A DNA stretch of 64,000 nucleotides, taken from NCBI GenBank assembly GCA_965113315.1, contig OZ220365.1, one strand, 5' to 3'. The stretch is from Podarcis vaucheri. Lineage: Eukaryota. Below are positions 6,367-56,745 of this stretch, in pieces. Numbering within the stretch: position 1 is the first letter of the stretch; each line of letters starts with the position of its first letter. The notes under the pieces are model-generated. The model had not been told where the DNA came from, ran no database searches, and saw nothing but the letters and a program-made list of their open reading frames with translations. The position numbers were made by a program, and so were the translations under genes.

Positions 6367-6505
6367 CAGGGATAGGGAAACCAGTGGGCCTCCAGGTAAT
6401 GCTGGACTACAATTCCCACAATCCCTGACCATTGGCCATACTGACTGGGGCTGATGGGAGATGGAGCCCAACAACATCTGGAAAGCTACAGGTTTCCCAT
6501 CCCTG
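6367..6505. mobile_element. hAT-type MITE
   Basis: TIRs CAGGGATAGGGAAACC / GGTTTCCCATCCCTG; perfect 8-bp TSD CCCTGTAA; internal palindrome. Confidence 0.9.
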
Positions 6506-9369: not shown

Positions 9370-9760
9370 GAATTCCTCAAAGAATTGATGCTTTTGAATT
9401 ATGGTGCTGGAGGAGACTCTTGAGAGTCCCATGGACTGTAAGAAGATCAAACGTATCCATTCTTAAGGAAATCAGCCCTGAGTGCTCACTGGAAGGTCAG
9501 ATCCTGAAGCTCAGGCTCCAATACTTTGGCCACCTCATGAGAAGAGAAGACTCCCTGGAAAAGACCCTAATGCTGGGAAAGATGGAGGGCACAAGGAGAA
9601 GGGGACGACAGAGGACGAGATGGTTGGACAGTGTTCTCAAAGCTACAAAGATGAGTCTGACCAATCTGCGGGAGGCAGTGGAAGACAGGAGTGCCTGGCG
9701 TGCTCTGGTCCATGGAGTCACGAAGAGTCGGACACAACTAAACGACTAAACAACAACAAC
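9370..9760 (+). mobile_element. BovB (RTE clade) LINE, 5'-truncated 3' end
   Basis: Translation IDAFELWCWRRLLRVPWT..LQYFGHLMRREDSLEKTLMLGKMEG.RRRGRQR.RWLD; (CAA)n tail; probable TSD AGTACC(T/C)CACA at 9359-9369 and 9761-9771. Confidence 0.95.
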
Positions 9761-11010: not shown

Positions 11011-13901
11011 CGGGTTTCTTCAACGTCAGCTCCTGTGATTGTAGCATTAAGGGCTGGAAGAAAATATTGCTTTATGCTCTCAATCTGGCAATGAAAACGT
11101 GTTTTCCCCATTTGATTCAAACTCTTAATATACTGTGATACTTTCTCCTCACATCTCTGCCCCTTTTCCCTCTTTTACCATTAATTTCACATTTAGGATG
11201 CACCCTGTCAAAATTTGATCAAACCTATTATGAAGTGTGAGGAACAAATATTTGAATTAGAGTCAGAGGTGAGGAAAGTGGCAGAAGCGACAGAAGAAAA
11301 ATAGGGACGAGTGCATTAGTATTGGAAGCACACAGCTAATTTGGAATTGAATTTAAATGAATTCCAAAATCGCAGTTTGGTAGGCATTTTATTATTGGGA
11401 TGTCTTATCTGGGTATGTAAGTAAAAGTCATACAAGACCTTCAATTGCAGCTTGGCCTGCTGCAAGGGTAGGAAATCATTCACTTGTGGCACTTGTAATG
11501 AGTGATGGACACATGTCCCGGTCCTCACTCCAAAAGGGGTTTGATTTTTTTGGTGTGCTTCTTGTAAGAATGCACATAATATTTGTGGACACCACATAAT
11601 GTTTCTAGAGTAGAGGCAGGGTTAACAATGGAGAGCAAGCCTTTCAGCTCCCCAGCAAAGCATTCATTCCTATCAAGGAGCAAATTGGGACTGCAATTCC
11701 CAGAATCCCCCAGTCGGAACACGACACTATTCATGTCAGTTTCCATTGGACAGAAGGCAGGTGGGAATGGATTTTTGTTGGAGAGCTGAGTCCCCCCTTT
11801 GCCTTGACAGAGGAACATTCTAAGGGTCTTCAGAAGGAGGACATGAAGAAGTGGCAGAGGTGGAGATAAATGCCAAACCAACTCTGCTCTGCTCAATTTG
11901 CCGTTCCCCATAAAAAGCCTTTCCAGTTTCTTTAAACTTGGAGTCTTTCATTGGTGACACTCATGTTGTTTAATGTCCTCCCTGTTCAGATACAAGAGGT
12001 CTTGTTGGTGATGGCATTCTGATGGTTCTTGAAGCTACACCTGCTTAGGCAAGTGTTCCCCTGAATTTGAACTTTTTTTATTATTCTCTGAGTGGGAAGT
12101 GTTGAAATGGCAGCCTAATAACCCACTGGCCCAGCACTAGAAACCAGTGTATTGGCAGGGAGTGGGAGCAATTTATTGCCTACGGATTGGAATCTTCTTT
12201 TCATCAACTTTCCAACCATCAGAATGCAGACTTCTCAGGCATACAAACAGAATGAGAGGTCACTCAGTTCACTTCCTTTGGCAGAAGCAATCTTTGGATG
12301 CCCTGTATGATTAGTTGCCTCTTGCACTAGTGCACAAGAGGAGACTTCTTCCTTAGGGGAGATGTTTGGAGCCCAGAGTCAGTAAATCAAATCTGGGGTG
12401 TGAGGAAGAAATCTTTGAGAGTATGTGTGGTGGGAAAAGGCAAGATTGAAAAGCTCATCTTGGATTTGTCTTTCTTAGACTTTCTCCTGGAAGCCTGTTT
12501 TGGCCCATCTGCTACTTAGGTAAAGGACTGTCATCTCGGTTTTCATAATGCCTAACTTTTAACACTTAAATTTTAATCTGTTGCTAAAAACATATAATAT
12601 TATTTAGCTTTGCACAACAGTGAGTTCATCAGTTCTTGTATTCCATAGCATATAACTTACAATAGTATATGAAACATAAATATTTTAGATCCAAAAAGGG
12701 GAGGAAAAAGAACAGGTTGTTCATGGATATCTACACAACATAACAGCATGCCTAAATTCAAGTTTCTCTTATACACACACTTTGGAACACTAAGGTCAGT
12801 AAGTGCAGTGTATAGATAATTTTGAAATTTGCATATGTTCACCTAATATTTCTCATGTCACCTAGCCTAACCGTTTTTAATTCAATAGAAATGCATAGTC
12901 GTTTTACTAATAAAATATGTGGGTTCCTTCATGTAAATTTACATTCACATCCCATTCGGCTTGTGTTAATTAAGCACACATTGTGGGAAGCACTGTGAAG
13001 CCTGGTAATATGAACTCTAAGCACAATTTAAACACTGATGATTTGAATAAATGGCATCCTATAAATATTGCTCATATATCTTCTTAGTGCTGTAGAGCAA
13101 TGAATTCTTCTGAGAGGAAGCAACATTGCTTTTATTACCAGCTAAGTGTTCTCTTCATTTGCATAAAGCATGTATACACAAACATTTTTTTTCTGTTTGC
13201 ATCTATAAAAGCATGAATGAGTAATCTCAAGGCAGTTTCAAAAAGTGGTTTCATTACTCAGGGAGAAAAGCAGGTGGGGCCTCCGACAGATCATTGCTCC
13301 TCACTGAACTAGCTGTGTTGGTACAGCATCAGCATCATCATGGCATGATTCTCAAGTGGCTGTGGTATGCACACCTGGGACACAAACCAACTAAGTCATG
13401 GAGTAGACTCATTGAAATCTAGGGACTTAAATTAATCATGCCTGTTGATCTCTTGTGAGTTTGCCTAGCAGTGTAATGCAAACCCAAGATCCATGAGTTT
13501 GGAACAGACAGATCTTGGGCTGTCCTGGCTATAAGTTGGAGCTCAGCTCTGGCTATGCTGGTGTAACTCCCTCATCCTAAACTCAGCCAGGAATATATAA
13601 GTCCCCTCAAGTCACTGGTTTAGCCAGGGATGATCCAGTAGAACATAAGCGGGTGGAATTTACACCAGTGTTAGTCCCCACAAAGGGGCATTCTGGGATG
13701 GACAAAGAGATACTTACACCTATTCCAAACTTCTTAAAGCTCAGTTAAGTGACCCAATAAACCAGTGGAGCTAATTCTGACAAAAAGGGTGGTGTAAGTC
13801 AAACTCTGTTTCAGAGGCTTGTTTTCTTCTCTGTCAGGGCTGGACTAGCTCAGGCAGTAGCAGCGCTGCTCCCAAACAGAGTTTGAAATAGGGGTAACTT
13901 A

Positions 13902-14246
13902 AAGGTAAAGAGACCCCTGACCATTAGGTCCAGTCATGGCCGACTCTGGGGTTCCAGCGCTCATCTCGCTTTATTGGCCGTGGGTGCTGGTGTACAGCTT
14001 CCGGGTGGCCAGCATGACTAAGCCACTTCTTGTGAACCAGAGCAGCATACGGAAACGCCGTTTACCTTCCCACCGGAGCAGTACCTATTTATCTACTTGC
14101 ACTTTGATGTGCTTTCGAACTGCTAGGTTGGCAGGAGCAGGGACCGAGCAACAGGAGCTCACCCCGTCGCGGGGATTCGAACCGCCAGCCTTCTGATCGG
14201 CAAGCCCTAGGCTCTGTGGTTTAACCCACAGTGCCACCCACGTCCC
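13902..14246 (-). mobile_element. Sauria SINE (lacertid type), full length
   Basis: Reverse complement GGGACGTGGGTGGCACTGTGGGTTAAACC..GGTTCGAATCCC..TAGATAAATAGGTAC..TTTACCTT; perfect 13-bp TSD TAGGGGTAACTTA. Confidence 0.95.
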
Positions 14247-16786: not shown

Positions 16787-17133
16787 AAAAGGTAAAGGTA
16801 AAGGGACCCCCGACCACTAGGTCCAGTCGTGGCCGACTCTGGGGTTGCGGCGCTCATCTTGCTTTATTGGCCAAGGGAGCTTTCGGGTCAGGTGGCCAGC
16901 ATGACTAAGCTGCTTCTGGCGAACCAGAGCAGCGCACAAAAATGCCGTTTACCTTCCCGCCAGAGCGGTACCTATTTATCTACTTGCACTTTGACGTGCT
17001 TTCGAACTGCTAGGTTGGCAGGAGCTGGGACTGAGCAACGGGAGCTCACCCCGGTGCGGGGATTCGAACCGCCGACCTTCTGATTGGCAAGTCCTAGGCT
17101 CTGTGGTTTAACCCACAGCGCCATCCGCGTCCC
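16787..17133 (-). mobile_element. Sauria SINE, full length
   Basis: Closely similar to 13902-14246; (ACCTTT)n tail; TSD ACACTGGCAAA(G/A)TA. Confidence 0.95.
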
Positions 17134-18712: not shown

Positions 18713-20899
18713 AGGTGGGGAGCCCTGAATGTGGGGGGAAATGCAGCAGAAGGCATGCAGGTTGTTGTTGTGCTGCCAGAATAGGCCATTGTAGGGGATT
18801 AATACCCTTTGTGAAATCACCTGAGCATATAGTCAGATTCTCATTCCATCTACTGAAACCTTTTGACCCGATGAAGGAATCCAGCTTGCAGAAGGAGGCA
18901 ATTCTCTCTTTCCTCCCAGAACCCCTTTACAGAGCCCCCCACCCACCCACTGTAACCGAACAACATGGATTTTCAGAGGGTGCAAGAAGACGCAGGAGAA
19001 AGGGAAATTCACCAATGGAGGGGTGGGGGCTGGATCCAAGAAGCAGAATATGAAAGTTCAGGCAAGATAACAAAAGAACCAGTTATAAGGACGTACTGCA
19101 AGTGCCTTTATTGGGCTATACTGAGACTGATTTTGACTGTGAGGTAGTGGGTTGTATACCTCCAAGAGGTTCCAGAATCTTCTAGCAATTTCATATGCTG
19201 CAATGAAGACTTTTGCTTTTAGAAAAGGAGTGGTGAATTTTCTCCAGACCAAGGCTCACATTATTTTATAGGCCACCTTCTGGAAACCTCATAATAGTGG
19301 CGAGCAGGACTAAAGGCAAAGAAGGGGCATTACCGCATTACATTCAGGCAAAAGCACTCCTAAAAGTGAATGTAGCTGAGATACCACTATAACCACTGGC
19401 CTGCACCGACCTTTTCCTGGGTTTGGTTCAGCGCTGGGCTCCTGCTGTAAGTCAGCATCCTTGATGGAGGGTTGCAGAGGTTTCCCAAGTCCTTCCTAGA
19501 GCTTTTGAAGTAACTATTACATTTACAAAGGCATGAAAAGACTATTTCCCTACACATATATAGCATAGGATCCATTGTGAGAAATAGTGTCTCTCACCTG
19601 CAGTCCAAATTGCTTCATTTTTTTCTCCCAGAAGATGAAGTTTCCATTTGCAGCTAGGAAAAAATATATATGAATAAGGTGGCCATAGCAGATTTATCTG
19701 TGGATCTAGGTGAATGCTCACACAAATAATATGTTCAGCATGCAAAAGATTGCTTTCTTTAAATTCCGCATAAATGCTAGCATACAACAATTAATCTCAT
19801 TTCTTCTTTAATTATCCTTTATTCCTATTGCAAAGGTGATATTTACTAGAACTGGTTTGAATAACAGATAGGTGCAACATTTAAATGTTGCAGCTTATTG
19901 CCAGATATTACGGGAAATCATGCCAGACACCCTCCAGCGAACTGGCCAAATTACTCAATACTGCAAAGTCTTCCAACACAAATATTTCGATTCATTCTAG
20001 GTGAGATGACTTGCAATTAAATCCCAATGACTGCAGTTTAAAATGCAAAGGGTCCCCTAATTTCTGCTCAGAAAGGATTGGCATGTGCACTTAATTGTTT
20101 CCAAGCCTTAGTAACTGGATCCCCACCTCTTCATTTTTCAAGAAACAATCCATTTATAGGTTAACACTTTAATTTGTGTATTTCATTCACACTTCCTTGT
20201 TTTTTAAAAAAATGGCAAGTTAGTAGGAAGGTGAGGTCTATGCAGCAGAAGAACAAATTTGGACAGCTTCAAAAGGGGAGGAGACGAATTCATGGAGGAC
20301 AAGATCATCAGTGAATATTAGCATGGCATCATTTTTCATTAAACCCTGTGGTCATTGCATGCAGCACTGTGTCTGTTCCACTGCACCTTGGGTTACAGTT
20401 ACAATGGATAAATTAACAGTTAAATTAACACTGAATCATGCTAAAGCTGTCTAGACACCTGATTAATGCAGACAACCATGTAACAAAGCAGTAAAATGCA
20501 TATTACGGTAAATTTCTCCAGCATTGGCAATCCATGGTTGTTGATGATGTTGATTTATTTGCTAACTTCAATTAACAACCCTTTACAATGAACAGTACTG
20601 AATCCACAAATTGTAAGATACGAACAGAGAAACTTGGAAACCTTTTGAGCTTTTTTGGAATGGTATGCATCAAAATGTCTCTGTAACCAGAAAAAAATAT
20701 ATATAGTACTTGGTTCCGCATTTGCTACTTTGTTGCCCTCCAGACTGGTGTTTTGTTGAAGGGGTATTTTGCAACATGTTTTTTGCACATTAATAGTGGC
20801 ATAGTTGTGGTTGTATTCTGCTTAGGTTTCTCCTGCAATGCTGCCAATTTTGTGGTCCAAAAAAATATAGATGTCCATACCGTTTGCATGCATGGATAC

Positions 20900-21334
20900 T
20901 GTCAGGGAACTGCCATTGGAGCTAGAGGCGGAGGGAAGGCTCCAGAGGGATGCCGGAGAGGGTCCCAGTAGGGAGAGGGGCAGCCCATTTGCTGGGGAAG
21001 GAAATCAGCGTAACACCAGTGGAGAAGGGGGGCAGATGGGGGAATCGGAGAGGAGGCTCCAAGACTCCTCACCGGAGACCAGCGGAGAGAGTACGGGTCC
21101 TCCGCTGCCCACACCCTCCCTGCGCAGAAGGCTTCCACTCAGGGAGACTAGGCGGAGACTAGGCGTCAAAAAACTTTTGTGCTGGAAGAAGTTCAAGAAA
21201 CGCCCACTGACGGATTCTGCCAGCGACTGAGACAGTCACAATGCTAGAGGCTGTTCAGTCAGAAAGGGTTCAACCAGGTAACCCAGCCAGGAGTGGCGGC
21301 AACTTACGCACGAGAAACCCCTAAACCCATTACA
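20900..21334 (+). mobile_element. Solo LTR (probably Gypsy/Ty3), 435 bp, containing a 109-codon open frame
   Basis: TGT...ACA termini; perfect 5-bp TSD GATAC (20895-20899, 21335-21339); CpG-rich; frame 20901-21230 open. Confidence 0.85.
20901..21230 (+). CDS. LTR-borne open frame: E/G/S-rich region plus Arg-rich C-terminal motif
   Basis: Open from LTR base 2 (VRELPLELEAE..) to TGA at 21230; ends RETRRRLGVKKLLCWKKFKKRPLTDSASD. Confidence 0.4.
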   Translation, partial: VRELPLELEAEGRLQRDAGEGPSRERGSPFAGEGNQRNTSGEGGQMGESERRLQDSSPETSGESTGPPLPTPSLRRRLPLRETRRRLGVKKLLCWKKFKKRPLTDSASD

Positions 21335-22010
21335 GATACCATACATGGTGATGCTCAGTTGTATATCAGAATGATATACAACAGCAGGCCTGCACAACTC
21401 AAATAGCTAAATCCAGCCCACCACACCTACCAACTGAAGCAACAATTGCTGTATTGGGGTGATGTTGCTAACTGGGCCTGAAGAATCAGTAGACTGTAAA
21501 CACGCCCCCTCAGGGGAAATATTATTCCACTTCTCCAACGTTCACCAGGCTTCTAGTCATGGTGCTAATCTTGGATTATGGTCTCAAGCTTTTGTTCAGA
21601 TGCGCTCCAATCCTGCACCCCCACCTGAAAACCCTGATGTGGATTGTTTCTCCTTGTAGTAATAATTGCATGCCGGCAGGTTAAAGGCAGAAAGTTAATC
21701 AAATATGGCTTTCCTGGCATTAATCTGAAAGGAACAAATAATAATTACAGATGAAATTATTACACAGAGAACTCCGCTTAAACAGTACATCCTCACAATA
21801 GAGAATAATTATTTTGAATAATAGCTGGACATCACAAGTCATACATGATAATGGGCTATTTATCGTGCCTTCTGTTTCTTATTGCCAGAAAGGTGTCTTC
21901 TTACTAGCACGACCTGCATAGGATAATTGCACTTGTTAATTTACTGTACAATTCTAACAGCGCATGTTGTCTCTATGAGTCCCTGAGTTGATTTCTAGAA
22001 TCCCTGTTTA

Positions 22011-39061: not shown

Positions 39062-39963
39062 ATTGCACCCCTGAGCCAGTCATGCCCCCTTTCAAGATAT
39101 CCTTTTCACCTTCCCCCTGGCTTTCCATCTCTCCCAACAGTGAGGTCACATCTACATTTAAAGCACCTACATTTACAGCACTATTATACCACTCATAACA
39201 GTCATGGAAAATCTTGGGAACTGTAGGATGCAGTCCATTCCCACTGAGCATTCTCAGTCCTCATTGAGCAGCCTTTGAATTTTGCCCCCACCCCTTCAGA
39301 TTTTTTATTGTGAATACCTTCCCCTAAGCCCACTGATACTTTTCTCGTGTGTGTGTGTGTGTGTGTGTGTATAGTGTAGTTTTCAGATAATGAGTTTGCA
39401 TTTCATTTAAAAAAGTAAACTCTAAGTCCTCTGTCAATCTAGCGGGATTTACATCATCATTAATCTAATGCTTGTTTAATGCAATGTTGTAGACAGGGAA
39501 ATGTCTCTTTACATTTAATTATAAAAATAATTTGAACAACGTAACCAGATGCTCATGATTATACTGTGGTCAAAATAAAACCCAGCAATGAACTCAGCAG
39601 CATGATAAGCATAAGGTTTGTGTATTGTTTTCCATTCTACATTGTAAAGAAAACATATTTCTATTGCATTTTTTAAAAAAATCAACATCATCATAAAAAA
39701 TCAACATCATCGTACTTACAGAACAGCAATTTTAAAATGCCTTCTGACTCTTTATTTCAATAAAAGTTTTCCAGTCAATTAGTTGACAGTGTAAGAAGAT
39801 ATATCCTAGACTGCTGCTGCTTAACAATGTATAATTGCTAATGATTTTTCTTATCTTTTTCATACCGTGTTTCTTAATTTAAACCTATTATGTTGCATTG
39901 TCAAGTTACTTCCACATTTTAATCTATTTCTTGTTTGGAGAATAAAGGATTGCTATGACCAAC

Positions 39964-40720
39964 TGTCAGAGCTGCTTCCAGATCCGAGCTCACAGAGGAT
40001 CACGCTAGCCAGCATTCACTGTATAAAAGTCTTTATTGATTTACAGTTTCCATTTTCAAGCTGTAGCGCGCAACTCTACGTCTTATAAGCTAGACCGGCG
40101 AAGCTCTGTCTGAGTCTCCGCCTCCTGTACACCAACTTAATACCCTAGCCTTACTCCACCTTTTCCTCCTGACCGTTCTTCTCTGGGTCCCTCTGCCCCC
40201 CGTGGTCTCTTCCTTCCGGGACTCTTCTGACGCTGACCCCCCGGACCCTTCTGTCTCCTTGCGGCGGGCTTTAGGACCTGGCTCCCTTTCCGGGCTGCTT
40301 ACTGTGCCGCCTTTCTTTGCATTTGAACTTGGCGCGCGCGCCCAACCTCCCACTTTCCGTTTGACCGTTTCTTCTCTCTCCGATGGAGGTGTGGCCACTC
40401 CTGACTTATGTCCTCCCCCCTGCGGCGAGCCGCCTGATCCCGATGCCTGGCGCCCTTCCTCCCCACTGCGCTCTGTTGGGGATGTTGGCCCCGATTTCCA
40501 ACTGCTGCTCTCTGAACCCCCTTTTGTCCCTTCTTCCTGGGGTGTCCCCCTAAGCTCCCCCCTTGCTCTGGTCACTGGCGCTCCTTTCTGTGAATCTTCC
40601 GATTCACTGGAAAGACTCGGAGATCTCGGGTCGTTGTCATCGCTCATCTTTCCTTCGGACTCCTCCCCTTCACTCTCTGTTTCCTCCCTTGCCCTCGCCT
40701 CTGCTCCTGAACCCCTGACA
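39964..40720 (-). mobile_element. Solo LTR (probably Gypsy/Ty3), 757 bp, containing a 209-codon open frame
   Basis: Perfect terminal inverted TGTCAG...CTGACA; perfect 5-bp TSD CCAAC (39959-39963, 40721-40725); minus-strand TATAAG (40087-40082) and AATAAA (40037-40032); CpG-rich. Confidence 0.9.
40090..40719 (-). CDS. LTR-borne open frame: S/E/G-rich disordered region plus Arg-rich C-terminal motif (first ATG at 40647, 185 aa)
   Basis: ORF track 40090-40647, extending upstream without a stop to LTR base 2 (VRGSGAEARAREETESEGEESEGK-MSDD..). Confidence 0.45.
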   Translation of the reverse strand, partial: VRGSGAEARAREETESEGEESEGKMSDDNDPRSPSLSSESEDSQKGAPVTRARGELRGTPQEEGTKGGSESSSWKSGPTSPTERSGEEGRQASGSGGSPQGGGHKSGVATPPSEREETVKRKVGGWARAPSSNAKKGGTVSSPEREPGPKARRKETEGSGGSASEESRKEETTGGRGTQRRTVRRKRWSKARVLSWCTGGGDSDRASPV

Positions 40721-43229
40721 CCAACTATTGATAAAGGAAGGCCTTTTCAAAAATAAAATAAAACAACAAAGTAGATTGCCCAATATGTCCTTGAGTTAAG
40801 GAATTCTGGCTTCAGGGGTCCACTGAGATTCTGCATTACTGATATTAATACATTTGCTTGCATCTGTATCTATCTCCAAAAATGCATTTTGCACCTGTTC
40901 TGCCTATGCAAGGGAAGCACCCCATTTTCATTAACCCCTCCTACCAGCATTCTATGTCATATCCCACGATATTCCAAAGGATACGCCAACCCTCAAGATT
41001 TGGGGGGCATGGAGACAAAACTGGGATTGAGGAATTGGCAAAAAATGGACTGCCCTTCCTTAGCCAAGCAGGCCTTAGCTGAGTGGTACTATCTTAGCCT
41101 CCTCAACCCTTTTCTGCTGCATCTGCAGAACAGCAGCCTTTTTCAGGAGTCAGGATGGTTTGGCCAAATAGCCCCACCCATGAAGAGTAAAAGCTTTGAG
41201 ACACTTGTGGCTGGTTTTTTGGGGGGAGGGGGTCATATTTGTTTGGAGGCTGTCATTGACAGTGGAGACAGATAGCAGGTGGCGTGCCAGACCCAGAAGG
41301 GGAAACGCCAAAGTAGCACTACTCCTTTGGGTCTCTCCTTTAGGGTTCAATGAGGCCAAGACCACTCCCCCATGGGCAACTGATTGTGGATGAGCTTGTT
41401 CCTAGGTCAGAGATTGGTGGAGAAGAGATGTAAATTAATCTGACTTCCAAGTAAGTGGTAGAATGCTGGGGAGCTGTGTCTCTGATAAGGGTATGAATGC
41501 AGCTTGTGAATGGGATGTTACAAGGTGTATGTCTGAACCCACATATGTGTGTGCCATGTGTATAGACCTTACTGAGACGAACGGAAGCTTTTGCATGGAT
41601 CCAGGACGTACACTCTTTGAAAATGCATGTGTAAGGTGAACCCCTATGTCTAATAAAGAATCTGTCCACGCTGGAAGGTTAAAAAAAAAGGCTTATTACT
41701 CAGAAATGGAAGACATGAAATGGTTATTACTTCAGACAGAAAGTTTATAGTTTTGTGGGCAACAGGTAATCATTTAGTAGATACAGACAACTTAATTCTA
41801 GTCTCAATGCTGGAACTAGTCTCCATATTGTCCAAAATGCATATATTCTGGTCACTGTTGTCAGTTTATTAGATAATGCATCAACATACAGAGAGCTGCA
41901 GTTTATACCATGTTTTCTACCATCTCTTGTTCAGCTACTGCAGTTTTTTCCTATAAATAACCAGAGACTGTATCACTGAAGTCAGGGGAGCCTTATGATT
42001 GACAGTGCTGGGAACACTGTCACTTCACAATGCAATTAACTAGGGTACAACCACATTGATTTCAGTAGCTCATGAGGTATGCCAAGCATACAGATAATCA
42101 GAGGTTTGAATGAATGGAAGTGCCATTTACATAGTATTGCATTGTAATAGGGCTTCATAGGAGACTGAAAATGGTTAAAGAACTAGGAGTTTCAAGTATT
42201 GAGTTTCCTGAAGGTTTCCTTGTATTTTTATGGCTCAAAAAAAAGGCTGATTTTGAAGGCCTATTTCTGAACTATTGCTCATGACTGTGAAGAACAAAAG
42301 CTGGGATTTTAAAGAGGTATCTAATTTCTGAGAAACATAAGCCCTCTGGGGCCCTTTGAAAATTCCCACCTAGTACATAATTAACTTTGTTCTCTGGTTC
42401 AGACTTAAGAGTCTGTATCGACTCAACAGGAACAGTAGGGCAATCTGTCAAAAGGTATATTCAGTGAAATATCCTTTGTCGGGTCTTCTTTTGCAGTACA
42501 AAATGTGTTGAACGATCATTGCTGAACCAATTAATGTTCACAGATTAGTATATATATTAGGGGTGTGCATCGAGCACAAGATTCAGTTTGAACGCCAAGT
42601 TGGTGCCTTGAAAAACAACCTGCTTCAGCTTGGAATAACTTGGAGGCTGCCTGATTCAATATGGAGTTCCAGTCCCCTCTGTTCCTCCCATCCCATTTCA
42701 CGATTGGATAATTTAAAAATTACTACAACCTTTCTCCCCCGAACCCATTTGATAGAAGTTGTTGGAATTTGTAGGCATACCCTATCCCCCGCCCCCGTTG
42801 AGTGGGTGGAGCCTTCAAAATTAGAGACAAATGGGTCATAGGACTTTTGTACTAGACACAGCTAAAATGCATTTTCCATCCAACTTTTTAAATTATTTTT
42901 GACCACAACTGAATGACATTTATAGGCAAAGTACTTTTTTATGGGAAAGAACGCCACCAAATTTCAGAAGGATGGCTGCAGTGGTTTTCTTGCAAGTGTA
43001 GCTATTATAGTTTTGGGGCAAGTGAACAAGGAATTGCGTCATCTCCACAGTGTTTTGTGGGTAATTGGTCTGGAAATTGCAGGCATGAGAGTGAGAAAAC
43101 TGCCAAACTGCATACAAATGGGTCCAATAGCTTTCTTTGGAAGCGGGGATTGGGCCTCCTGTCCATAATCCCCATTTTTTAGCTCTGCACTCTCCAAGGA
43201 TCAAAACTCCACACAATCCCTTTTATAGT

Positions 43230-54472: not shown

Positions 54473-56309
54473 AACGGGGGGGTGTGTGATTTGAGCCCCC
54501 TGGCTTATCATGTGCTTATATACCATTTTGCCACTCGCTCACCATACTAAACCAACAGAACTGCTAGTGTGATCCATTAAGAAATGTAATGTAAACCTCC
54601 ATTGTGGATTGATGTTTCATCAAGTCTTACTTTGATTTGGTCTTGTACATTCACCACCAACTTGCTTCTTGGCCTCTGATGTAGCCCTCACATTTCTCAT
54701 GGCTATATACCCTGCCTGTTATCTCTGACCTGTTTCACACACCTCTCTATAGATTGATCGTTACAGAGCCACTGTGAAACTTGCATGGGCTCATCAATGA
54801 ACTTCCTTACTTCCACTCTAGCAAGCTTATATGTCAAAGGAGGTTCACATACCCCTTCAGATCAGCCTATCAGCTGCAACAGGGATGTAACACTAAGGTT
54901 AATAGGTCTCTTACTTGGATATACAGAAAGATCTGCCAGTGTGTCATCATCTCTGCTTCTCAGGTCAACAGTCTTTAAGACACCTGAGCACAAGAGTCTC
55001 CAGATTATCATTTCACTGAATGCATACCATGCTGAGCGCTGGATAGTTGGCAAAGCAGCATCCACTACTGCCTTCTTTTGCAGCCTAATTCACCATAACT
55101 GAAACAAGATGTGGTGTGGGTCTTTCCCCCAAGTGTGTTTTAGTTTGAAGTTGAAACAGCAGAGATAGTGCACACAAATTATGTATTCCACAGTCAGTCT
55201 TAAGTGGTTGAGACCTTTAAGGTCATGTTTTGAAACCCATATGTGACAAAGCCTGTCTGCCTCACCTGGGTCAGCCTCTTCCCCTCGCTCACCCCACCTC
55301 CATGACACACTTGTCAGAGCCCTGTCAGTCCCTGATAAAAGTCACGAAAGGTTTACTGTACTGTATATAGAAACAAAGTGGCATTCCTGAGTTGTGAGCT
55401 TAGCTTTTCTTCCGCCTTTCCTCCATGCTTTTGCTGTAACTAGTAATGACTGATCCAGTTTAAACATTACAGATATCTATCTTCCTTGAAGTAAAGCAAA
55501 GGACCTATTCTGCAGCCCAGTAACCTGCCAAGGAGGTCATGGGTGCTGATCTTTCAGATAAGAACACAGATGTTGCATTGGCCTTCATTCAACAGGTTGC
55601 TCCTTCCCTAGAGACAGTAGATACTCCAATGACTGCAGTTGCAAAGCCCTCTTGCCGTAAAAATATAATATATGAACCAGCCCACAGTTTCTCTGTTGAA
55701 TTAAAACTGCACTATATCTTAAAAACTTAAGGCATATAGAGGGTTGGATACTCAGAAGGCAGTGTTTTTTTGGCTGACAAGCTATGTGAGTCACTGGGCA
55801 GTGACTCCTTTTTGTTTATACTGAAGATCTGCACCCCCATCCCTGTTTCCCAGCATGATAATGGTGCTAGTGCAATTGTGAAATTTTCACTCTGCGGGAG
55901 AAGCTGAATTCACAGAAATGTTTTGCGTGCATGTGTTTTTGATTGTTGAAAGGGAATAAACAGCAATGGATGGCTGCCAAGATTTCTCCAACAAACATGA
56001 TTAAAGCGCTATTAAAGCCCATAACATATAAAGCATGCCATTTCATTCTCCTATGACTGAGTGAGATATTTTCTGAAGATGCTCAGCAGGACAAAAGTGC
56101 TTTTGGAACCAGCAAGGCATGATGTGTCAGATCACATATTCATTGCATTGTGAGGCTGTGGAACAAGGTGAGATTATCAGAGCCAAAGTCAAGGGGAGAG
56201 GAGGAGGGGGGAAATGCCATTACTTCTGACAATGGCCAGAAATATCTGGAGGTCTGAAAATCTTTTGGTGTGTTACTAAAAGTAGCTAGAACTTGGTGTT
56301 AAATGTAAA

Positions 56310-56542
56310 GATGTTTAGTCATGTCCGACTCTTCGTGACCCCATGGACCAGAGCACACCAGGCACTCCTATCTTCCACTGCCTCCCGCAGTTTGGTCAAA
56401 CTCATGCTGGTGGCTTCAAGAACACTATCCACCCATCTTATCCTCTGCCGTCCCCTTCTCCTTGTGCCCTCCATCTTTCCCAACATCAGGGTCTTTTCCA
56501 GGGAGTCTTCTCTTCTCATGAGGTGGCCAAAGTATTGGAGTC
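56310..56542 (-). mobile_element. BovB LINE 3' end (inverted)
   Basis: Peptide MRREDSLEKTLMLGKMEGTRRRGRQRIRWVD..VHGVTKSRT, homologous to 9370-9760. Confidence 0.92.
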
Positions 56543-56745
56543 TTCATGGATCACTGCCTTGCCGTGGCAAAGGAGCTTGAATAACTCAGAGAAGCTATGA
56601 ACTATGCCAAGCAGGGCACCCAAGATGGACAGGGCATAGCTGAGAGTTTTGACCAAACGTGATCCACCTGGAGCAGGAACCAGCAAACCACTCCAGTATC
56701 CCTGCCAAGAAAACTCCTTGGACAAAGACAACAGGCATATAAAGT
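56543..56745 (+). mobile_element. BovB LINE 5' UTR segment
   Basis: ATGGATCACTGCCTTG..CACCCAAGATGGACAGG..GAGAGTTTTGACCAAACGTGATCCACCTGGAG..AAACCACTCCAGTATC matches the recalled BovB 5' region. Confidence 0.75.

Follow-up and report, generated by a model that had tools for sequence, protein, structure and literature searches.

The solo LTR at the centre of this report (LTR A, Table 1) very probably belongs to a high-copy lacertid chromovirus whose pol frame continues past the chromodomain into the 3′ LTR, and the open frame of LTR A is read as the fossil of an integrase tail. A second solo LTR near 40 kb in the window, that is, in the whole 64,000-nt stretch of DNA analysed here, belongs to another family and is called LTR B. 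To judge from protein alignments, the frames of both LTRs have the same explanation, namely Pol/integrase tails.

Table 1. Features of the two solo LTRs in the window, and junctions in seven Pol proteins of lizards and snakes (the raised dot marks the point at which the LTR starts)
Feature	Position	Strand	Evidence and remarks
Solo LTR A, chromovirus-type Ty3/Gypsy family	20900..21334	+	435 bp, TGTCAGGG...TTACA, TG..CA ends, duplication
Target-site duplication GATAC, left copy, 5 bp	20895..20899	.	Read from sequence; empty-site contig of organism G
Target-site duplication GATAC, right copy	21335..21339	.	Read from sequence; empty-site contig
Probable relic of a Pol/integrase C-terminal tail, 109 codons + TGA	20901..21230	+	U3 part of LTR A; translation, protein matches
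Basic C-terminal motif RRRLGVKKLLCWKKFKKRPLTDSASD, NLS-like K-K-x-K-K-R-P	21150..21227	+	22/26 residues identical in P0001
Non-coding remainder of LTR A, 104 bp	21231..21334	+	Presumed end of U3, R and U5
Solo LTR B, second family, 757 bp	39964..40720	-	CCAAC duplications at 39959-39963 and 40721-40725
Probable relic of a Pol tail, second family	40090..40719	-	209 codons + TAG stop, abuts TATAAG box; AATAAA further on
Junction in P0001			...GGEGGPGEEVD·VRE..
Junction in P0005			..GGPGGEVD·VRE..
Junction in P0006			..FGEGVD·VRE..
Junction in P0010			..GLEEGVD·VTE..
Junction in P0012			..GLRGGSD·VRE..
Junction in P0014			..GGFEGGMD·VRG...
Junction in P0020 (viper)			..TAGSD·VSD..

The first-pass annotation had described LTR A as a 435-bp TG..CA element with a GATAC target-site duplication, and its coordinates, ends and duplications were all confirmed, with an empty site in addition. 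The termini, TGT...ACA at 20900 and 21334, form a short inverted repeat. The frame had been described as opening at base 2 with V-R and as rich in E, G and S. Translation bore this out with 109 open codons: from 20901 it reads VRELPLELEAEG...RRRLGVKKLLCWKKFKKRPLTDSASD, starts V-R-E, is E/G/S/R-rich and is closed by TGA at 21228-21230. Neither a clear TATA box nor an AATAAA was seen in 21231-21334. LTR B begins with TGTCAGGG, as LTR A does, and is likewise open from base 2, over 209 codons. It had been claimed that the two LTRs show little DNA likeness beyond this shared start, and blastn with 7-base words indeed found no similarity between them. An ORF of 184 codons (40202-40756, plus strand) lies antisense to the frame of LTR B, on the pyrimidine-rich strand; it is best explained by composition and calls for caution with ORF-based calls in these LTRs.

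The insertion of LTR A was followed with Logan contigs from three related species and one RNA run, placed on 20400-21834. The left junction is spanned with zero differences by a 721-nt contig of organism A, and the right junction by a contig of organism B. In a 998-nt contig of organism G, a related lizard, 20894 is followed directly by 21335, and 5 letters there can be assigned to either side. The site is empty and exact, with a single GATAC; LTR A is present in organisms A and B. Because the empty site is exact, LTR A is a true insertion; from the same site it follows that the insertion appears to postdate the split from organism G. The copy is fairly young.

The family of LTR A is abundant. 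In three species the summed word depth, a measure that does not give an exact copy number, was about 40 in the flanks and 2e4-3.7e5 over the LTR, and on the strength of this excess the family is put at hundreds to thousands of copies. The depth peaks in two bins spanning 21168-21263, and other members of the family diverge sharply right after 21235-21239, where loose ends were found. Between LTR A and the bulk of the family there are 9 differences, of which 4 fall on third, 4 on second and 1 on first codon positions, too few for a test of selection. Within the 64,000-nt window neither a second copy of LTR A or LTR B nor an internal region was found, and no other retroelement-sized open frame was present anywhere in it. 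As to the surroundings of the element, the left flank contains an interspecies indel at 20851-20860, where organisms B and G have 39 different letters in place of 8 bases, and a small repeated segment at 20736-20783, a 48-bp bin that stands at 6-10 times single-copy depth in all three DNA runs. SINE-like repeats, which we take to resemble squamate tRNA-derived SINEs, occur elsewhere in the window at 13900-14246 and 16793-17133, at 9513-9752 and 56304-56543, and at 6416-6478 with three more copies; the longer pairs are 89-90% alike and the 63-nt family 68-75%.

The identity of the frame was revealed by protein comparison. In an exhaustive search of representative proteins with the A peptide (phmmer), the best match was P0001, a 474-aa protein from a 1528-nt Logan contig. 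Residues 1-109 of A match residues 373-474 of P0001, its C-terminal end (E 1e-24), and by blastp the identity is 62% over 109 aa (E 4e-27). The C-terminus of P0001 is like that of A (...RRRLGVKQLLCWKRFKRRPLSDSASD, ..SDSASD) and its stop stands at the same position. Upstream of the match, P0001 carries the end of the integrase core (..HPETNGQAER..), followed by SH3_Tf2-1 at 134-195 (E 7e-20) and Chromo at 221-269 (E 3e-11). A Chromo domain is also present in P0005, P0010 and P0012. Because of the match to P0001 and of the domains upstream of it, the frame of LTR A is taken as the C-terminal continuation of a chromoviral integrase, and the assignment of its family to the chromoviruses is made through the domains of the tail-bearing P0001. 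At just 62-67% identity, P0001 is the closest protein to A and does not represent its own parent family. A search restricted to the tail of P0001 returned no protein except P0001 itself, and a word search with P0001 retrieved Gypsy integrase proteins of Podarcis, the matches naming Podarcis muralis and P. lilfordi.

For the second family the corresponding protein is P0014, an 813-aa product of Podarcis muralis named 'Gypsy retrotransposon integrase-like protein 1'. In local blastp the B peptide is 86% identical to its residues 605-812 over 208 aa (E 9e-102). P0014 contains H2C2, rve and SH3_Tf2-1 domains and gave no Chromo match; it is 48% identical to P0001 across the integrase region. At the protein level P0001 is continuous over residues 1-474, with the LTR-homologous part from 373, and P0014 is continuous to 813, with the LTR part from 605. 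There is no separate start, the LTR frame being open from its first codon and continuous with integrase in both proteins. The UniProt proteins of Podarcis muralis are gene models which may include spliced joins; P0010 comes from an ENA contig.

Pieces of these elements were also met in gene models with other names. P0002 (UniProt A0A670JKI3, Podarcis muralis) is a 210-aa Gla-domain gene model whose residues 16-69 share 65-67% identity with residues 1-54 of the A frame; either an LTR copy of the family of LTR A was exonised as its first coding exon or annotation pulled it in. P0009 (Podarcis muralis), annotated as 'vomeronasal type-2 receptor 26-like', and P0039 (Rhineura floridana), annotated as 'transmembrane 9 superfamily member 2 isoform X2', carry Gypsy integrase domains and look like chimeric gene models with retroelement pieces.

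The point at which the LTR starts is marked in the proteins by a characteristic junction, D·V followed by R, T or S, which was found in seven lizard or snake Pol proteins (Table 1). We infer that the Gly/Glu-rich run before D·V is the translated polypurine tract (PPT), and the LTR boundary within P0001 and P0014 is likewise placed by protein alignment. A codon GA·T that ends on the first base T of the LTR fits the junction, because every Asp codon starts with GA; the GTC AGG that follows is the rest of the conserved LTR terminus TGTCAGG. Since the junction is shared and P0001 and P0014 are related, the best explanation of the common phase of the two LTR frames is that related elements inherited it along with the junction, and not that unrelated LTRs converged. 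In the acidic linker between the chromodomain and the LTR junction (residues ~290-350 of P0001), a separate motif, acidic-x-F-x-G-F, was noticed, for example EDFVGFPAS, SSFRGFPAS, EEFIGFCPS, TDFLGFVTP and STFQGFSSA. P0001, P0004, P0005 and P0006 each have two copies of it, and P0010, P0012 and P0013 have one or more; across families its conservation seems to exceed that of the LTR-encoded end.

The proposed course of events is as follows. In full-length members the pol frame would run through the chromodomain, an acidic linker and a Gly/Glu-rich stretch, read as the translated PPT, enter the 3′ LTR in phase GA·T GTC AGG (..D·V-R..) and stop with about 100 bp of the LTR still to come or, in the second family, at the TATA box. 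U3 would then be both promoter DNA and the coding sequence of a disordered integrase tail of 100-210 residues, acidic first and then basic. By the usual life cycle of retroelements, with a genomic RNA of the order R-U5-gag-pol-PPT-U3-R, translation of the end of Pol would use the 3′ copy of U3, and the 5′ copy would serve as the promoter. Recombination between LTRs would have produced the solo copy LTR A, in which the frame would be a fossil without upstream pol. That this frame is still open would be due to the youth and the low T content of the copy and not to its expression.

RNA reads were consulted in organism G, which is without the LTR A copy. There, in about 12% of a bulk RNA run, 67 reads fell on LTR A with 88-95% likeness and in both directions, and therefore members of the family are transcribed at a low level in this organism. 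At the 5′ edge of the LTR, 9 reads share one upstream sequence; they agree perfectly and may come from one locus. This upstream sequence was considered as an open, PPT-like end of pol and rejected, as the alignment most likely starts at 20899, which puts an in-frame TAA two codons before V. With that TAA most likely in frame, these 9 edge-crossing transcripts show no read-through.

The LTR-encoded tails differ in length and agree in plan. Counted from the junction, they comprise 90-109 residues in A, P0001, P0010, P0012 and P0020 and 209 in B and P0014, and all of them are acidic and Ser/Gly-rich first and then basic near the end. Over the last 26 residues, A and P0001 show 4 differences, all conservative (K/Q, K/R, K/R, T/S); in the acidic part the two have far more differences, with in-frame gaps. 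When the C-terminal 40 residues were compared, A and P0001 scored 170 and A and P0010 scored 45, the latter with p<0.001 against shuffles. P0010 ends ..KGLLCWKRRVTEDSS, and ...KGLLCWKRR..EDSS is common to A and P0010; from these alignments the LLCWK motif is judged a true link between A and two closer relatives. P0010 and P0012 are marginally alike in the same segment (p about 0.03), and the tails of B and P0014 gave nothing significant there against every other tail (p above 0.08). The restriction of changes at the basic end to conservative ones, together with the depth peak at 21168-21263, suggests a constraint on this end of the tail, which may lie on the peptide or on promoter-proximal DNA. 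P0001 was modelled with AlphaFold from an alignment of 30 sequences. In the SH3 and chromodomain pLDDT was above 90; from residue 300 or so through to the C-terminus, the LTR-encoded part included, it was mostly below 50 with no secondary structure. The LTR-encoded tail is thus predicted to be disordered.

A C-terminal motif shared by A and B had been proposed in the first-pass annotation, and it did not rise above chance. The ungapped 12-mer pairing of RRRLGVKKLLCW with RKRWSKARVLSW has a BLOSUM62 score of 24; within the last 45 residues no local alignment beats it, and it reaches p = 0.32 against shuffles. For the whole peptides the comparison of A and B gives p = 0.06; the comparison of C-terminal 40 residues given above, in which B and P0014 stay at p above 0.08, leads to the same result. 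From the pairing, selection on an LTR-encoded peptide module had been suggested. What survives of this suggestion is a coding frame at the level of the family, with a phase that is not accidental; what does not survive is the self-standing module, the frame being the C-terminal tail of the element's own Pol/integrase. The pairing had also been put forward as a candidate for a new system. A Pol-into-3′-LTR layout is already published for plant chromoviruses (PMC3059260, PMC3605345), and as the base-2 open frames of the lizard LTRs are read as Pol-tail fossils, the candidate is removed.

Other explanations of the frame have to be weighed against the integrase tail. Taken alone, the open frame of LTR A is not above chance, and a purely compositional origin, in which a purine-rich, T-poor U3 is open by accident and its peptide is meaningless, draws on several observations. 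The T content is 14.5% in LTR A and 13.1% in LTR B. Among dinucleotide shuffles the frame of LTR A is equalled by 2.7% in the fixed frame, 18% in any forward frame and 33% in any of the six, the respective values for LTR B being 0.1%, 0.9% and 2.3%. The antisense strand of LTR B bears an equally long open frame. Moreover, stops are created by only 3.9% of the possible single substitutions in the A frame, so that a young solo copy can keep its frame intact without selection. For the family, however, this origin is refuted by homology: the integrase C-termini match at E 1e-24 (A) and 9e-102 (B) with the same stop position, the basic ends of A and P0001 differ by conservative replacements only, and the LLCWK motif is common to A and P0010 at p<0.001. 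Composition as the whole explanation is hence very improbable, and the open frame of the single copy A needs no selection. Hardly credible at all is an independent, LTR-encoded accessory gene comparable to MMTV sag or HIV nef, with its own start or a spliced mRNA and with a module common to unrelated LTR families. That U3 is filled by a frame in two LTR families would agree with such a gene, as would the in-frame ATG codons (codon 46 in the A frame, codon 25 in the B frame) and the low-level transcription of the family in both directions. It is opposed by the first full LTR codon, which is no start codon and where the frame is already open, by the continuity of the frame with integrase in P0001 and P0014 with zero stops between, and by an A–B motif that stays within chance. 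Searches of Pfam matched zero families with either LTR frame, and a word-index protein search with the 109 aa of A, covering targets of 0.55-1.75 times the query length, gave zero matches.

A further reading accepts the translated tail and treats it as a tolerated by-product, the last 80 bp of the frame being conserved as promoter or enhancer DNA just ahead of the transcription start. The depth peak at 21168-21263 does adjoin the presumed promoter region, and in LTR B the stop abuts the TATA box. On the other hand, the motif shows only conservative amino-acid replacements (K/R, K/Q, T/S), and the frame has been kept in at least 5 diverged families with tails of 90-209 residues. We regard this reading as unlikely; constraints on the peptide and on promoter DNA can act together.

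The integrase-tail reading of LTR A has several counterparts among known elements. MMTV sag and HIV-1 nef are genes inside or overlapping U3, with their own start codon and a spliced mRNA. They resemble LTR A in that U3 DNA also encodes protein and differ from it in being separate genes, whereas the frame of LTR A would continue pol. In yeast, Ty3 POL3 is said to end within the downstream sigma LTR; if so, Ty3 is like A in that its pol frame reaches the 3′ LTR and unlike it in that the overlap is short and comes without a chromodomain or a long tail. The integrases of Ty5 and MLV have C-terminal targeting tails. As in A, these and the Ty1 integrase have at their very C-terminus a short motif, basic or peptide, within a disordered tail, the disorder in A being predicted; theirs directs nuclear entry or tethering, and that of A may do so by analogy. 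Unlike the tail of A, the tails of Ty1, Ty5 and MLV are encoded upstream of the LTR. For Ty1 integrase, a C-terminal NLS is mentioned among the cited work in a passage of PMC3605345.

The closest parallels come from plants. The gag-pol ORF extends into the 3′ LTR in chromoviruses of CRM group A (Neumann et al. 2011, PMC3059260) and in Beetle7 and Bingo1-4/7 of Beta vulgaris (Weber et al. 2013, PMC3605345). The latter paper (PMC3605345) places the chromodomain ahead of the PPT in the clades outside CRM. Like the family of LTR A as reconstructed here, the CRM and Bingo elements are Ty3/Gypsy chromoviruses whose frame crosses the PPT and stops within the 3′ LTR, with a U3 that is coding as well as regulatory. 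The Bingo families resemble A further, their chromodomain being upstream of the PPT and their LTR encoding only an extension; what the LTR of CRM encodes is a putative targeting domain, the CR motif. The family of LTR A differs from CRM and Bingo in its vertebrate host and in its tail, which is without a Pfam match, 100-210 residues long, apparently disordered, and acidic then basic. At the protein level A shares the architecture with CRM and Bingo, as far as can be read from the alignments, and membership of the CRM clade is not claimed. In literature text searches, which were non-exhaustive, no description of the pol-into-LTR layout was found for vertebrate chromoviruses. The reading of pol into U3 is known from plants, and the vertebrate chromovirus case, as deduced here, appears to be new.

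As to the role of the tail, the KKFKKRP / LLCWK end may be a signal for nuclear import of integrase or for its tethering to chromatin or a target, a tentative assignment by analogy with the C-terminal NLS of Ty1 integrase and the CR motif of plant CRM elements, to which we give somewhat less than an even chance. A more doubtful proposal is that the disordered, acidic-then-basic tail as a whole could form a hitherto uncharacterised module of the integrase in squamate chromoviruses; next to the chromodomain it would supply a second tether or import signal, would steer integration and would be the vertebrate counterpart of the plant CR motif. For annotation, the finding means that solo LTRs of these families can pass for exons, and the Podarcis muralis Gla-domain model opens with a piece of this kind. 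For the biology of these elements, it would mean that the layout of the CRM/Bingo type exists in vertebrate chromoviruses too, and the conserved basic end of the tail becomes a candidate for integrase import or targeting. If the tail is indeed such a module, its coding role would constrain the evolution of the U3 promoter.
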